DNA of 64,000 nt from Blastocladiella emersonii ATCC 22665 (Eukaryota > Fungi > Blastocladiomycota). The translations under genes and the position numbers were made by a program. The notes beneath the pieces were generated by a model. It was not told where the DNA came from, searched no databases, and worked only from the letters and a program-made list of their open reading frames with translations. This document shows, piece by piece, positions 5,990-32,357 of the stretch. Within the stretch, counting starts at the first letter, position 1. The number at the start of each line of letters is the position of its first letter. The stretch spans positions 372,001 to 436,000 of the forward strand of contig JANHCV010000014.1 of NCBI GenBank assembly GCA_025594325.1, in the 5' to 3' direction.

Positions 5990-7585
5990 GGCACCATCCC
6001 GCCCACGCAGCGCCTTGACACGGCGCCCGTTCCGCATGACCAGCGCGACCAGATCATCCGCGACGTGCACGACGTGGGCCACTCGGGTCCCGCGGCCACA
6101 CAGCAGCAGCTCGTCGTCCTCGGCCACGAATGGTCCGGCATGCTCGCCGACTGCCAGCGCGTCATTGCCGGTTGCATCCCGTGCGCGCGGTTCTCGGCCA
6201 CGCGGCAGGGTTTCCACCCAATGCGCTCAATTGAGGCGCTGCTGCTGCTCAACCACCTGTCCATGGACTGCATGCAGCTGCCCATCTCGCCCGACGGATA
6301 CACGCACGTGCTCGTGATCATCGACATCTGCACCCGGTTCGCGTGGCTCCACCCAATCCGCTCCGCGTCTGCCAGCGAGGTCGCCACCTGCTTCCTGGCC
6401 ACGTGCTTCCAGTTTGGCTTCCCGCGCATCATCCAGTCTGACAACGGCCCCAAGTTCGCCAACCAGATCATCGCCTCGCTCGCCGACATGGCCGGCATCG
6501 ACCGCCGCCTCGTGTCGCCGTACCACCTGCAGGCCAACGGCGCCTTGGAGCGTCTCGTTCGCTCGGTCAAGGAGATGCTGCTCCCCTCGCTCAACGGGCA
6601 GCTCGACCGCTGGCCCGCCATGGTCCCGGCCATCCGTTACGCCTACAACATGCGCGCGCACGCGCGCCACGGCTCGACGCCCTTCTCGCTCATGTTCGCG
6701 CGTCCCGCCAACGCGCTCCGCGACTACTGCGCGCAGCCGCCCCTCCGCGACATGACCGAACAGGAGCAGCTCGCTCGCCTCAGGCTCATGACCAAGTCCA
6801 TCTACCCCGCCATTGCGCAGCGCACCGCCGACCGCAACGCCGTTGTGCAGGCGCGCGCCGATCAGCACCGCAAGATCATTGCCACCGACTTCCCCGCGGG
6901 CGCCATCGTCATGCGCATGACCACCGACCGCGCCTCCCGCCTCGACCCACGCTACGAGGGCCCGTACACGGTGGTCCGCCGCAACCGTGGCGGCGCGTAC
7001 GTGGTCCGCCGCAACCGTGGCGGCGCGTACGTGCTCCGCGACGCCACTGGCGCACTCGTCGAGAAAATCCCCGCGCACCACCTGCGCCTCATCGAGCCCG
7101 AGTCGGCGCCTTTGGGCGAATCGGACACCGTGCGCGACATCCTCCGTCATCGCGACGGCGCGAACAGCGAGCGCGAGTACCTGGTCCGCTGGTCCGATCG
7201 CTCCGCCAAGAACTCGTGGATCCCCGCCAGCGGCTTCGACACCGCCGGCGCCATCAACGACTACCACAAGAAGATCTCGGCCGACACCTGGCTCGAGCGC
7301 CAGCGTTCGCTGCAGCGTCTCGCCTCCAAGGTCGCCGCGTCTTCCCCTGCGCCCGCTCCACGCCAAGATCCTGCTCCTCGCCAAGTCTCGGCCGACAAGT
7401 CGCAGTTCTCGGTCACGCAGTCCTCAGCCGCCTCATCGCCCGCCCGCGCCAACCCGAAGCGCGCGCGCTCACCCTCGCCCGACCCGCCGTCGTCCATCAC
7501 GCGCAGCCGGTCCGGTCGCCAGCTCAAGAACGCGGTGTACCAAGGGTTCGTCAAGTCGCTCAGGTCACGGTCTGGGGGGAGGTGA
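5990..7585 (+). pseudogene. pol: Integrase (HHCC, DDE) with C-terminal chromodomain; 30-bp internal duplication (VVRRNRGGAY x2)
   Basis: VHDVGH...CIPC, LSMD, IIQSDNGPKF, YHLQANGALER, GPY, and chromodomain ILRHR...REYLVRW...NSWIP. Confidence 0.92.
7574..7585 (+). other. Polypurine tract
   Basis: GGGGGGAGGTGA immediately before the 3' LTR. Confidence 0.85.
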
Positions 7586-27155: not shown

Positions 27156-28790
27156 CTACGCGGACGACGACAGCGTCATCCCACTCGCGCGCTCCTTGAG
27201 GTACCCGGCGAACACGTCGTGGACCGACGCCGACGTCCCCACCTTCTCCTTCTTGGCGCCCTTGGCGGCCGTGCGCAGCTCGTGGTACGCGCGGACGTCC
27301 TTGTCGAACGCGTCGAACAGGTGCATCGTGTCAGACGGCCCGCCGGCGGCCTCGGGGTGGAACTGGACGGCGCGCCACTTACCGCCGCCGCCCATGATCC
27401 CCTCGTTGGACCCGTCGTTGGCGTTGCGGTAGTACGTCATCCACCCGTCGGGCATCGTCGCGGGGTTGTCGTCGAGCGCGTAGCCGTGGTTCTGGGACGT
27501 GATGACGCACGTCGGCACGGGCTTGGTGAGGTCGAGGCACGGCTGGTTGTGGCCGCGGTTGCCGTACTTGAGCTTGTAGGTGCTCATGCCGGCAGCGAGC
27601 CCCATGATCTGGTTGCCCATGCAGATGCCCATGACGGGCACCTTGGCGTGCGCGGGGACCGCGGCCTCGGCGGCAAACACCTTGCGCAGCGCGGCCACCG
27701 ACGCCGTCTGCTGCATCGGGTCGCCGGGACCGTTCGACAGGAAGATGCCGTCAAACTGCTGGTACACCTCGTGCAGCGGGAAGTCGTGCGGCAGCAGCGT
27801 CACCTCGACGTCGCCCGGCGCGAGCAGCGCGCGCAGGATGTTGTACTTGGCGCCGAAGTCGACGACGGCGACCTTGTGATTGCGGCCGCGGCCGTAGACG
27901 ACAGGCGACTTGGTCGAGACGGACGCGACGAGGTTGGTGGTGGCGTTCGGGTTATCGAAGGCGACCTGCTCCTGGCCGCCGACGGCCACGGTCCCGAGCG
28001 TCGACCCGTGGTTGCGCAGGACCTGGACGAGCTCGCGGGTATCGATGCCCGAGAGGATCGGGACGCCCTGGGCGCGGCACCACGCGCCGAGCGACATGAC
28101 GGCCTCGCGGTGCGAGAACTGCCACGTGTAATCGGCCACGACGACCGCGCGCGCCCAGATCCGGTCGCTCTCGAACCGCTGCGGCAGGCCCGAGTCGAGG
28201 TCGTACGTCGGCGCGGGCACGCCGTAGTTGCCCGCGAGCGGCTGTGTCAGCACCAGGATCTGGCCCGCGTACGACGGGTCCGTCAGCGACTCCGGGTACC
28301 CGACCAGCGCCGTCGTGAACACCACCTCGCCGCCGATCGAGCGCGGCGCGCCGTAGCACTGCCCCGTGAACACGTGCCCCGACTGCAGCTTGAGCTCGGC
28401 GGGGACCGCCGTCTCGGGCGTCGGCGTCACGCGGAACGACGGCGACGCGGCGGTCGAGGACCGCGCGCCGAGAGACAGCGGCGTCAGCGGCGTCGGGACC
28501 AGCGAGGCCGCCGGCTTGGCGGGCGCGTTGGCGGCCACCTGCAGCGCGAGCGCCGCGGGCGACTTGGAGGCCTTGGTGGGGGTGACGGGCGTCGACGGCA
28601 CGACCGTGGCCAGCGTGCGCGCGAGCGAGGCGGCGGCGGCCGCGGCGTGCGCGGGCGACGGCTTGGTGGCGGCAAAACGAGCCAGGTCTACGTGGGAGGC
28701 GAGAAGGCGAGTGTGAGATGGCGGTGCGGTCCGGCGGTGGGAGACGGGGAGTGCAGCGCGACGCATACGGGTGGTGGCGGAGAACATCAT
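27156..28790 (-). CDS. CPA1: Carbamoyl-phosphate synthase arginine-specific small subunit, with presequence-like N-terminus; probable 81-nt intron 28688-28768
   Basis: GEVVFTT, YPESLTDPSY, ILSGIDTR, LSNGPGDP, GICMGNQ (catalytic Cys), NRGHNQP, SQNHGYA, QFHPE. Confidence 0.97.
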   Translation of the reverse strand: MMFSATTRMRRAALPVSHRRTAPPSHTRLLASHVDLARFAATKPSPAHAAAAAASLARTLATVVPSTPVTPTKASKSPAALALQVAANAPAKPAASLVPTPLTPLSLGARSSTAASPSFRVTPTPETAVPAELKLQSGHVFTGQCYGAPRSIGGEVVFTTALVGYPESLTDPSYAGQILVLTQPLAGNYGVPAPTYDLDSGLPQRFESDRIWARAVVVADYTWQFSHREAVMSLGAWCRAQGVPILSGIDTRELVQVLRNHGSTLGTVAVGGQEQVAFDNPNATTNLVASVSTKSPVVYGRGRNHKVAVVDFGAKYNILRALLAPGDVEVTLLPHDFPLHEVYQQFDGIFLSNGPGDPMQQTASVAALRKVFAAEAAVPAHAKVPVMGICMGNQIMGLAAGMSTYKLKYGNRGHNQPCLDLTKPVPTCVITSQNHGYALDDNPATMPDGWMTYYRNANDGSNEGIMGGGGKWRAVQFHPEAAGGPSDTMHLFDAFDKDVRAYHELRTAAKGAKKEKVGTSASVHDVFAGYLKERASGMTLSSSA

Positions 28791-28833
28791 AGTTGAGTGT
28801 GGTTAAAGGTGTCGGGGATCAGGGATGGATCAA

Positions 28834-28920
28834 TCAATGCGAGGCCGACTTCCACAGCTGGTCGCAGAGGTAGTCGAGGGAGACGAGTTCTTGGTCGTGG
28901 GCGTAGCAGGCAGCAGCCAT
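28834..28920 (-). CDS. AAP: Upstream ORF encoding an arginine attenuator peptide (28 aa, MAAACYAHDQELVSLDYLCDQLWKSASH)
   Basis: ATG at 28920, TGA at 28834-28836, 43 nt before the CPA1 ATG. The core DYLCDQLW matches the known AAP core (Neurospora arg-2 DYLSDHLW; yeast CPA1 DYISDHIWKTSSH). Confidence 0.93.
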   Translation of the reverse strand: MAAACYAHDQELVSLDYLCDQLWKSASH

Positions 28921-29067
28921 CCACGAAGGCGGAGGGGTCGGGTGTGGGTGGGAGTTGGTGAGGGTGAAGGGGTGTAGACGGGCGAGCGTCGACACGACTT
29001 GAGTGTGGTGGGGTAGTGGTTGAGGATGGAGGACGAGAAGAGGGGAGGAGCGGGGACGCGGTTCCTT

Positions 29068-29073
29068 CTTATA
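29068..29073 (-). promoter_or_regulatory. TATA-like box upstream of the AAP/CPA1 leader
   Basis: TATAAG on the minus strand, about 150 nt upstream of the uORF ATG, in otherwise GC-rich DNA. Confidence 0.45.
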
Positions 29074-30554
29074 GGCGCGAGCGGGGCCGTGGGCAACGCA
29101 GCAGCAGCGACAAGGCGAGATACTGCGAGATAGCGTGGGAGATCTTGTCGCTCTGCCCGAGATAACCCGCCTCCCGGCCGTCGACTCGAGCCACACGTGC
29201 CCCGTGGCTTGCTTGTTGCCGCATCGGGCAGGGCCACATGAAAAGGCAACGCATCGCGGGGCTGGGAGATAGCATCGCGCGCTCCCCATTGGCTGGAGAC
29301 CACGACGCGCGCCGCGCGCCTTGTCATCAGCGCGGGATCAGCGCCTCGATTTGGAACGTTGTGCGGAGACGACTTCATTTCGCGTCGCGTCATTCACTCG
29401 CGGCTGCGGCCAGCGGTGAACGGGAACGGAAGCGGACGTGATCGCGACGTCGTGGCCGCCGTGGCCATGGTCATCGTGCGGGTGCGGAGCCGCCTTCCGT
29501 GTCTCGCGCCCGTGATCGCCGTCGCTGACAGCGATCGGTGAGGGAAGTGGTTCAGCTTGAGTGTCGCGCTCACGGCATGGGACCCATCCCGCCGTGCAGG
29601 AAAGCCGTGGCCATGGATGATCGTCCGCACAGCGCCCGCGTGAAAGTGCAGCTGTCTCTCATCGTGGCGATCAGCAGGGCAACGCGTCTCCCACGCGTGT
29701 CTCGCGCGTCGCCGGGACGCGAGACGCGTTGGGCAGGGACACTGAGGCTCGAGCTGGCCCTCGGTCAGGCCCTCAATCCGCGCAAGCAAGCGCGACATAG
29801 CCCTGATCCTCGCCGATCCCGCTCTTCGGCCCACTCAACGACGTCGACCAAGGTCGCGTAGGATTGCGGACCTGACCATCGCGCTGAGCAGCGGTCCATC
29901 GCGGGCGCGTCTCGCTGCACACTTGTCGGCTGACAAGGTCCATCGCAGCAGGGCATGCCAGGCACACCGTCCAGCGCGACCTGGCACACTCCCGCCTGAA
30001 CCGCGGCGAGACAGATGCCCACTCATCGCCTCGCACAAACCACGCTGCCCTCGGTCTCGACGATCCCGCCACGCAGCCGCCCATCGCACGCGAGTCCACT
30101 CGCGATCGCCGCGACGACCTCTCATGCCGCGATCCTGGGATACACGACGTGTCAGTGACACCGCTCAGCGACTTGGCACACGTCGGTCTCCACTGCCCGA
30201 ATGCAGTCGTGTCGGCTCAGGGCTCCGCTCTCGCCCGCGACTACCGCTCCCCTCGGCCCGCGCGATGGCCTCGCACGCCCACTCACGCTTTTGACCGCGA
30301 TGAACCCCCTCGCCCCGCTGCAACAACTTTCACCTCCATCCCGTGCCCGCGAACGCGTCGCGCCTCTGAGAGATGATCGGGATCAGCAGCGCGATCAGCC
30401 AGCTGCTCGAGGGCCCTTCGAAATGCCTGGTGTGACTGCACGTGACGCATGATTCGCTGTCTCCGGCGCCTCGCTGCTTGCTTTCGCCCTCACCTCTTCG
30501 CGACGGTCCCTCCCTCCGTTGCCTTGCCCTGTAACGCATAGCAGCACCGCCACC

Positions 30555-32357
30555 ATGAGCGACAAGACGTACACCGACGAGGTCACCGGCGAGCAGGTCT
30601 CCAAGTCGTATGTATCGCCCCCGCCGTGCGCACTCGCCGAAGACCGAGCGAGCGAGCGCTGACGCCCGTCACCCGTCCCGTGTGTGTGTAGCGAGCTCAA
30701 GCGCCGCCAGAAGCAGCGCCAGAAGGAGCAGGCCAAGGCAGCGCGCCCTGCCGCCCCCACCGCGGCGGCTGCCACGCCCAAGGCGGCGGCGGCCAAGTCG
30801 GCCGAGGAGGAGGAGGAGGAGCTGACGCCCAACCAGTACTACGAGATCCGCACCAAGACCATCACCAAGCTGCAGGCCGACGGCCGCATCAACCCGTACC
30901 CGCACAAGTTCCACGTGTCGATGGGTCTGCCCGCCTTCATCGAGAAGTACGCGTCGCGGATCGAGCCCGGCCAGCGGCTCGAGGGCGAGGTGGTGTCGAT
31001 CGCCGGCCGCATCTCGACCAAGCGCGCGGCGGGCGCCAAGCTGCGGTTCTACGACATCCACGGCGAGGGCGTCAAGGTCCAGGTCATGTCCGCTCTCCAG
31101 GACCATACCGACGAGGAGGTCGGGTACGAGGAGGTGCACGAGGTGCTGCGCCGCGGCGACATCATCGGTGTCGTCGGTGTGCCGGGCAAGTCCAAGATGG
31201 GCGAGCTGTCGCTGTTCCCGTCGCGCACGGTGCTGCTGACGCCGTGCCTGCGCATGCTGCCGAACCCGCGCACGGGGCTCAAGGACCAGGAGACGCGGTA
31301 TCGCCAGCGGTACCTTGACCTGATCATGAACGGGTTTGTCCGCGACCGGTTCGTGACGCGCACCCGGATCATCGGGTACCTGCGCAACTTCCTCGACCAG
31401 CAGGGGTTCCTCGAGGTCGAGACGCCCATGATGAACATGATCGCGGGCGGCGCCACGGCCAAGCCCTTCATCACCCACCACAACGACCTCAAGCTCGACC
31501 AGTACATGCGCATCGCGCCCGAGCTGTTCCTCAAGATGCTCGTGGTCGGTGGGCTCGACCGCGTCTACGAGATCGGCCGCCAGTTCCGCAACGAGTCGAT
31601 TGACCTGACCCACAACCCCGAGTTCACGACCTGCGAGTTCTACATGGCGTACGCCGACGTGACGGACCTCGAGCAGCTCACCGAGCAGCTCGTCTCGGGC
31701 ATGGTCAAGTACGTGACGGGCGGGTACAAGCTCAAGTACAACCCGGAGCCCGACTCGGACAAGACCTACGACATCGACTTCACGCCCCCCTTCCGCCGCA
31801 TCCGCATGATCCCGGGCCTCGAGGAGCGCCTCAACGTGACGTTCCCGCCCGCCGACGAGCTGGCCGGCGAGAAGGGCCGCAACTTCCTCGACAACCTGTG
31901 CAAGAAGCACAACGTCGAGTGCGGCGCGCCGCGCACGTCCGCTCGCCTCCTCGACAAGCTGGTCGGCGAGTTCCTCGAGTCCGAGTGCATCTCGCCCACG
32001 TTCATCACCGAGCACCCGCAGTTCATGTCGCCGCTGGCCAAGAAGCACCGGTCCGTGACGGGTCTGTGCGAGCGGTTCGAGCTGTTTGTCGCGACCAAGG
32101 AGATCTGCAACGCGTACACGGAGCTCAACGACCCCATGGACCAGCGCCAGCGGTTCGAGCAGCAGGCCGCCGACAAGGCCGCGGGCGACGACGAGGCCCA
32201 GATGATCGACGAGAACTTCTGCCAGTCGCTCGAGTACGGGCTCCCGCCCACGGGCGGGTGGGGCATGGGCATCGACCGCCTCGTCATGATGCTCACCAAC
32301 GCGAACAACATCAAGGAGGTGCTCCTGTTCCCCGCCATGAAGCCCATCGACCAGTAA
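30555..32357 (+). CDS. KRS1: Cytosolic lysyl-tRNA synthetase, class II (intron 30608-30691)
   Basis: Spliced start [25 protein letters not shown]; [56 protein letters not shown]. Confidence 0.98.

Follow-up and report, generated by a model that had tools for sequence, protein, structure and literature searches.

An upstream open reading frame of the arginine attenuator peptide family precedes CPA1 in Blastocladiella emersonii and in other non-Dikarya fungi

The arginine attenuator peptide (AAP) is the textbook eukaryotic example of metabolite sensing by a nascent peptide within the ribosome. We analysed a stretch of 64,000 nucleotides from Blastocladiella emersonii ATCC 22665 (contig JANHCV010000014.1, positions 372,001 to 436,000), called the window below, in which an AAP-type upstream open reading frame (uORF) lies before the CPA1 gene. 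The original prediction of this element, made from the letters alone, had supposed a zoosporic fungus, in agreement with the source, a member of the Blastocladiomycota. The main open reading frame (ORF) runs on the minus strand from 28790 to 27156 and encodes 544 amino acids, with Pfam matches to CPSase_sm_chain (2.4e-40) and to GATase, the class-I glutamine amidotransferase (3.2e-41). The closest protein in the database is P0001 of B. emersonii ATCC 22665 (99% identity). The NCBI model of P0001 uses the same ATG (28790) and removes an 81-nt GT..AG intron (GTATGC...CGTAG) at 28768..28688. This intron (28688-28768, minus strand) is in frame and stop-free within the presumed targeting sequence of CPA1, and would add 27 residues if retained. 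The features of the locus are listed here.

27156..28790, minus strand: CPA1/arg-2 orthologue, the small (glutamine amidotransferase) subunit of arginine-specific carbamoyl-phosphate synthetase (CPSase), from Pfam and protein match
28791..28833, minus strand: spacer of 43 nt, ATG-free, from the uORF stop to the CPA1 start, from the sequence
28834..28836, minus strand: uORF stop TGA, five residues past the Trp, the same as in the recovered ascomycete AAPs
28837..28920, minus strand: coding sequence of the AAP-type uORF, 28 codons, from the sequence, a leave-one-out hidden Markov model (HMM) and the start context
28849..28905, minus strand: conserved 19-residue core Y6..K24, YAHDQELVSLDYLCDQLWK, from the 12-sequence alignment A1, codon usage and hhalign
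28854-28852, minus strand: codon of W23, equivalent to Neurospora crassa W19, from the alignment
28875-28873, minus strand: codon of D16, equivalent to N. crassa D12, from the alignment
28920-28918, minus strand: uORF ATG, in a weak context (U at -3, G at +4)
28921..29067, minus strand: presumed 5' leader before the uORF, pyrimidine-rich and without ATG, from reading the sequence
29068..29073, minus strand: TATAAG, a TATA-like motif by resemblance to the consensus only, 148-153 nt upstream of the uORF ATG

The uORF encodes MAAACYAHDQELVSLDYLCDQLWKSASH and occupies 28920..28834 with its stop. Its predicted length of 28 codons and its end 43 nt upstream of the CPA1 ATG agree with the sequence, and the identity of the gene with the Pfam matches of the main ORF. 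It had also been said to be hidden in a longer frame, and the ORF listing indeed places it inside a 151-aa ATG ORF (28834..29289) and a stop-free stretch that extends up to 29337. Since the GC content of the window is 60-72%, a uORF buried in a long open frame is unsurprising. If transcription starts within 28921..29067, no other AUG of the mRNA would precede that of the uORF.

The CPA1 loci of 11 other non-Dikarya fungi (four Blastocladiomycota, four Chytridiomycota in the broad sense, two Zoopagomycota and one Mucoromycota) were inspected on the coding strand upstream of each gene. An AAP-like uORF was found in all 11. The original prediction had named the CPA1 leaders of Blastocladiomycota, chytrids and Zoopagomycota as the place to look, and every one examined has such a uORF with the core kept. 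The uORF is contiguous in three of the relatives; in the other eight the exon joins were deduced from the splice consensus, not from RNA. The peptides are as follows.

Allomyces javanicus: MSFSYVHDQETVSADYLCDQVWKTAAQTC, contiguous
Catenaria anguillulae: MATLLLPITYNHPFELVCLDYVADQLWKSTSC, contiguous
Coemansia reversa: MYTHSFERNSSDYIADQVWKALDI, contiguous
Rhizopus delemar: MYIHAYEKCSADYICDQIWKSSENY, inferred GT..AG join
Basidiobolus: MYIHTQEKNSADYISDQIWKALAQSC, inferred GT..AG join
Rhizoclosmatium: MPYRHSQETTAQDYISDQVYKSIAA, inferred GT..AG join
Phlyctochytrium: MYSHSSENVCNDYISEQVYKCSGSQ, inferred GT..AG join
Synchytrium: MYAHKYEKVSNDYIADQVYKSFIAA, inferred GT..AG join
Gonapodya: MVLGYQHTQEEVSLDYIDDQIWKASSNF, inferred GT..AG join
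Paraphysoderma: MYSAYTHACEKVQLDYVSDQLWKASSI, inferred GT..AG join
Sorochytrium: MPVAVVYAHSQELVALDYVWAQVWKIVV, inferred GT..AG join

Strict and relaxed single-exon motif scans had missed eight of the 11 relatives, because of introns within the uORF and not because the uORF was absent. With B. emersonii included, eight of the 12 uORFs carry one or two short inferred introns within a coding region of 75-99 nt (loci L003-L007 and L009-L011). These introns occupy two main positions. One lies within the codon after DY[ILV] (Paraphysoderma, Gonapodya, Sorochytrium and the environmental locus L040) and the other directly after DQ, in phase 0, 1 or 2 (Rhizopus, Basidiobolus, Rhizoclosmatium, Phlyctochytrium and Synchytrium). 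In Synchytrium and Gonapodya there is a further, N-terminal intron, and the uORFs of Blastocladiella, Allomyces, Catenaria and Coemansia have none. The environmental CPA1 locus, L040:282-312 (JGI metagenome 3300020081), reads ...TAATAG at the boundary followed by TGACCAACTCTGGAAAACCAGCTCTTGCTAA, that is (S)DQLWKTSSC and a stop, and the CPA1 ATG lies about 120 nt further downstream. This element is a second AAP exon of the Paraphysoderma/Gonapodya type on an unspliced contig; no first AAP exon was found in the 280 nt of upstream DNA.

In all 12 species the uORF ends at an in-frame stop 4-7 codons past the Trp or Tyr, and an ATG-free spacer of 12-207 nt separates this stop from the CPA1 ATG. The uORFs of the non-Dikarya lineages are 24-32 codons long, and the longer N-terminus that the original prediction had regarded as unusual in B. 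emersonii is normal among them. The same holds for the two substitutions it had singled out: the Gln in place of His is invariant in the 12 non-Dikarya sequences, and a Cys in place of Ser stands at the same position in Allomyces and Rhizopus. Rhizoclosmatium, Phlyctochytrium and Synchytrium, three Chytridiomycetes, have Tyr at the position equivalent to N. crassa W19 and read DQVYK (L006:3693-3922, L007:3714-3849 and L010:3672-3954), and the Trp is kept in Gonapodya and all remaining lineages.

Alignment A1 of the 12 peptides has seven invariant residues: Y6, H8, E11, D16, Y17, Q21 and K24 in the numbering of the window peptide. At each of these columns both synonymous codons are used across the species, a pattern that points to selection on the peptide and not on the RNA, as in a conserved-peptide uORF. 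Read in six frames, the window has 1478 stop-to-stop segments; among them a leave-one-out HMM built from the 11 relatives scored the uORF at 45.8 bits (E=2.2e-13) and the second-ranked segment at 7.3 bits (E=0.23). Translating the window in six frames gives a single instance of the motif DY[LIVM]x[DE]Q[LIVM][WY]K, and 200 block shuffles give none. When 760 nt of the leader were compared as DNA, the uORF was the only significant similarity to Allomyces (2e-14), Catenaria (8e-8) and Sorochytrium (7e-6), and the match with Sorochytrium stops exactly at the inferred exon boundary of its uORF. The leader on either side of the uORF could not be aligned among the relatives compared. Within the 167-residue open stretch of B. 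emersonii, likeness to the relatives begins only at residue 145.

For comparison with the classical family, ascomycete AAPs were recovered by scanning metagenome contigs with the back-translated pattern QDY[LI]SDH[LI]W, which requires the His. At 22 of the 28 loci the aligned CPSase small-subunit domain is preceded by a uORF of 20-25 codons, which ends about 80-260 nt ahead of it. The recovered peptides include a Neurospora-type AAP, MNGRPSVFTSQDYISDHLWRALSA (L019/L029, also L013), which we take to be close to the AAP of N. crassa. They also include a yeast-type peptide, MFSLSNSQYTCQDYISDHIWKTSSH, ending in WKTSSH (L023/L035), which presumably corresponds to the CPA1 leader peptide of Saccharomyces cerevisiae. 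Five loci (L016, L021, L025, L030 and L037) matched the DNA pattern with no CPSase ORF downstream in the DNA fetched. L021 and L030 look like chance matches within another frame. L037 reads ...QDYISDHLWKANVN and a stop, like a true AAP, and is without an upstream Met or CPS match, which an intron or truncation of the contig may explain.

These recovered peptides show that the window uORF is a homologue of the fungal AAP. An HMM made from 18 ascomycete AAPs only ranks it first of the 1478 segments (11.1 bits, E=0.014; next segment E=1.6), and hhalign aligned the early-diverging and the ascomycete profiles over 17 columns with a probability of 97% (E=1.2e-10). Residues 16-24 of the window peptide, DYLCDQLWK, conform to the core D-Y-[LI]-x-D-x-[LI]-W-[KR]. 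As the original prediction had stated for D12, Y13 and W19, the spacing is identical: D16, Y17, D20 and W23 of the window peptide fall on D12, Y13, D16 and W19 of the Neurospora-type AAPs. The likeness it had seen between the tail WKSASH and the yeast WKTSSH is present in the recovered yeast-type peptide as well. It had further called D12, Y13 and W19 critical. This is upheld for D12, since the exchange D12N in N. crassa, or D13N at the corresponding residue in yeast, eliminates the response to arginine and D12 is in contact with uL4 at the constriction of the tunnel (PMC7038982); it is weakened for the Trp by the Tyr of the three Chytridiomycetes.

The Pfam family PF08252 (Leader_CPA1; 23 positions, gathering cutoff 18.5 bits) matches six of the 12 peptides. 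The score is above the cutoff for Basidiobolus (22.7 bits) and for Paraphysoderma (21.7 bits), and just below it for four more peptides; no match is reported for the peptides of Blastocladiella, Allomyces, Catenaria, Sorochytrium and Synchytrium. Because several early-diverging peptides give no reported match, we consider the current PF08252 model to be fitted to Dikarya-type sequences. Searches of other resources were negative too. The window peptide gave no match in a PDB sequence search. A protein database search with alignment A2, whose first row has 40 aa, gave 16 word-sharing candidates, none of which scored, and short uORF peptides are essentially absent from that database or unscorable in it. 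The AAP sequences, searched as text strings, did not occur in the open-access papers searched.

In 11 of the 12 species the uORF AUG has a pyrimidine at -3 (U in B. emersonii), and in all 12 the CPA1 AUG has an A at -3, a strong context that B. emersonii shares. This layout of a weak upstream AUG and a strong main AUG fits leaky scanning combined with arginine-induced stalling. In yeast and Neurospora, leaky scanning, a stall at the uORF stop and nonsense-mediated decay have been described (PMC7969011, PMC11550727, PMC7049704). We consider it quite probable that the uORF is the B. emersonii orthologue of the AAP and controls CPA1/arg-2 translation. Its homology and architecture are observed here, and its most likely function, arginine-dependent stalling, is predicted by analogy with the Neurospora and yeast systems.

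Under this reading, the weak context of the uORF AUG (U at -3) would let most scanning 43S complexes pass it and start at the CPA1 AUG with its A at -3. At low arginine, the few ribosomes that translate the 28 codons would terminate normally. At high arginine, the nascent peptide would act within the exit tunnel through its DYLCDQLWK core, with D16 in the role of N. crassa D12. It would inhibit the peptidyl-transferase centre, and the ribosome would stall with the TGA in the A site; by the mechanism described in PMC7969011, the TGA at 28836-28834 would be the site of the arginine-induced stall. Held up 43 nt short of the CPA1 AUG, the stalled ribosome would bar the way to scanning complexes arriving later and would probably expose the mRNA to nonsense-mediated decay, and CPA1 synthesis would drop.

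Several observations weigh against this reading. The Pfam scan of the window peptide, in versions of 28 and 50 aa, gave no match at E<=10. A direct match at the PF08252 gathering score is an operational and not a biological yardstick, and very short queries are easily lost in HMMER's filters. The in-frame stop-free stretch reaches 29337 with an ATG at 29289, and a longer product is possible from the DNA. The place of the uORF in the CPA1 leader is predicted from DNA: a search for sequencing runs gave no RNA run, and the three runs that contain the locus are DNA of the source sample, with genomic contigs and no informative joints there. Gln replaces the His of the ascomycete DH pair in the window peptide and Cys replaces Ser; with Tyr in place of Trp in three chytrid orthologues, Neurospora-derived rules may not transfer exactly.

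Those differences could reflect a conserved uORF that descends from the AAP and acts constitutively or on a different signal in the Blastocladiomycota, the DQ/C variant and the Y-x-H-x-x-E being signs of altered sensing. The Gln stands in place of a His found in every recovered ascomycete AAP, a recovery biased by a pattern that required it; the Y-H-E triad is invariant in the 12 non-Dikarya sequences and missing from the recovered ascomycete AAPs, and Pfam does not report the window peptide. We regard such a change as unlikely, since in every species the gene downstream is the CPSase subunit of the arginine pathway, the D-Y...D...W-K core with its D12 equivalent is retained together with the leaky-scanning architecture, and arginine feedback is the simplest reason for a uORF to stay linked to one gene over four phyla. 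The 28 codons could otherwise be an N-terminal coding exon, or a piece of the longer ORF from the ATG at 29289, spliced to CPA1. The frame open up to 29337 would allow it, and the public Paraphysoderma model P0005 starts with MYSAYTHACEKVQLDYVS and runs on into CPA1. This is very improbable given the in-frame stop shortly after the Trp or Tyr in 12 of 12 species and a spacer whose length (12-207 nt) and phase with respect to CPA1 differ among the species. The B. emersonii model of NCBI opens at 28790, likeness to the relatives begins late in the open stretch, at residue 145 of 167, and the TATA-like motif lies inside the longer ORF. Least credible is an untranscribed relic or a chance open frame resembling an AAP, even if long stop-free stretches are common in intergenic DNA this rich in GC and the uORF is known here as a DNA element. 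It is retained in 11 relatives with only synonymous variation at the invariant residues, it is the sole alignable island of the leader, and neither the leave-one-out HMM score nor the shuffles are compatible with accident; on these grounds a chance ORF was ruled out.

Read as an AAP orthologue, the uORF can be compared with the known systems. Like the N. crassa arg-2 AAP, it directly precedes the gene for the small subunit of arginine-specific CPSase, carries the D-Y-[LI]-x-D-x-[LI]-W-[KR] core with its four residues in register, has five residues from Trp to stop and begins at an AUG in a weak context; both main proteins also appear from their sequences to have an N-terminal presequence. It differs in having 28 codons instead of 24, Gln for His17 and Cys for Ser15, and an N-terminal Y-x-H-x-x-E where the Neurospora type has P-S-x-F-T-S-Q. 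The B. emersonii spacer measures 43 nt, its leader has no intron and its function is predicted. With the 25-codon S. cerevisiae CPA1 leader peptide it shares the gene pairing, the core, an almost identical C-terminal tail (WKSASH against WKTSSH) and the distance from Trp to the end. The yeast peptide has DH and S where B. emersonii has DQ and C, the N-terminal halves differ, and the B. emersonii leader is GC-rich and its peptide predicted from sequence. For yeast CPA1 all three steps, namely leaky scanning, stalling at the uORF stop and nonsense-mediated decay, have been demonstrated (PMC7969011). Bacterial TnaC and the mammalian AdoMetDC MAGDIS uORF follow the same logic, a leader peptide sensing a small molecule in the tunnel and stalling at or near its own stop (PMC7038982, PMC8429421); their sequences, effectors and genes are unrelated, and the resemblance is analogy, not homology.

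Public annotation handles this element and its gene poorly. The NCBI label of the stand-alone small subunit, and of many orthologues, is 'Multifunctional pyrimidine synthesis protein CAD', where UniRef has arginine-specific small chain; CAD was apparently assigned automatically and in error. In Paraphysoderma sedebokerense (L004:4001-4270), model P0005 begins at the uORF ATG, takes the 5' splice site of the uORF with another acceptor and so skips the uORF stop into CPA1, whose main Met lies at ...QRINMLALNVF. This fusion of AAP exon 1 to CPA1 may be an artefact of annotation; otherwise it is an alternative splice, which would bypass the attenuator. In Sorochytrium milnesiophthora (L003:4001-8270), the 940-aa model P0003 joins glutathione synthetase to CPA1. 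The model probably merges two genes, because an AAP uORF (ATG 6197, stop 6431) and a plausible CPA1 ATG at 6536 fall inside it. In the window, CPA1 (minus strand) and a lysyl-tRNA synthetase ORF (30684..32357, plus strand) are divergent, and the roughly 1.9 kb between them (28790-30684) contains the AAP leader plus many spurious GC-rich ORFs.

The sampled uORFs come from five Blastocladiomycota, four Chytridiomycota in the broad sense, two Zoopagomycota and one Mucoromycota. This lends support to the original prediction that the system predates the split of the flagellated fungi. An AAP orthologue in every early-diverging fungus examined dates the origin of the switch, as read from these sequences, to the last common ancestor of the fungal phyla sampled, or earlier. 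No paper tying the AAP to chytrids, Blastocladiomycota or Mucorales was found in the open-access literature searched. The breadth of AAP conservation among fungi has reportedly been studied already, by Hood et al. in 2007 and by Spevak et al. (Spevak, Ivanov and Sachs) in 2010, and some of the comparison made here may be in print already. The N-terminal Y-x-H-x-x-E is invariant in all 12 non-Dikarya peptides and absent from the recovered ascomycete AAPs. We tentatively propose, at somewhat less than even chances, that the ancestral fungal AAP was a longer sensor than the ascomycete peptides, from which all work on the mechanism comes, and had the 19-residue core Y-x-H-x-x-E-x-x-x-x-D-Y-[ILV]-x-D-Q-[ILV]-[WY]-K. 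At a distance of 17-22 residues from the C-terminus, the Tyr/His/Glu triad would sit beyond the tunnel constriction.

The B. emersonii uORF joins a long-known family and overturns nothing established. It belongs to an element that gene predictors mishandle and of which the Pfam model misses about half of the peptides described here. The early-diverging peptides show several natural variants, with Q in place of H, C in place of S, Y in place of W and the extra invariant Y-H-E, that can help to take arginine sensing apart. If the triad is needed, Gln21 is ancestral and Tyr can replace Trp, the arginine-sensing rules established in Neurospora would describe a trimmed derivative, and the early-diverging peptides would be the natural variants with which to map arginine sensing.

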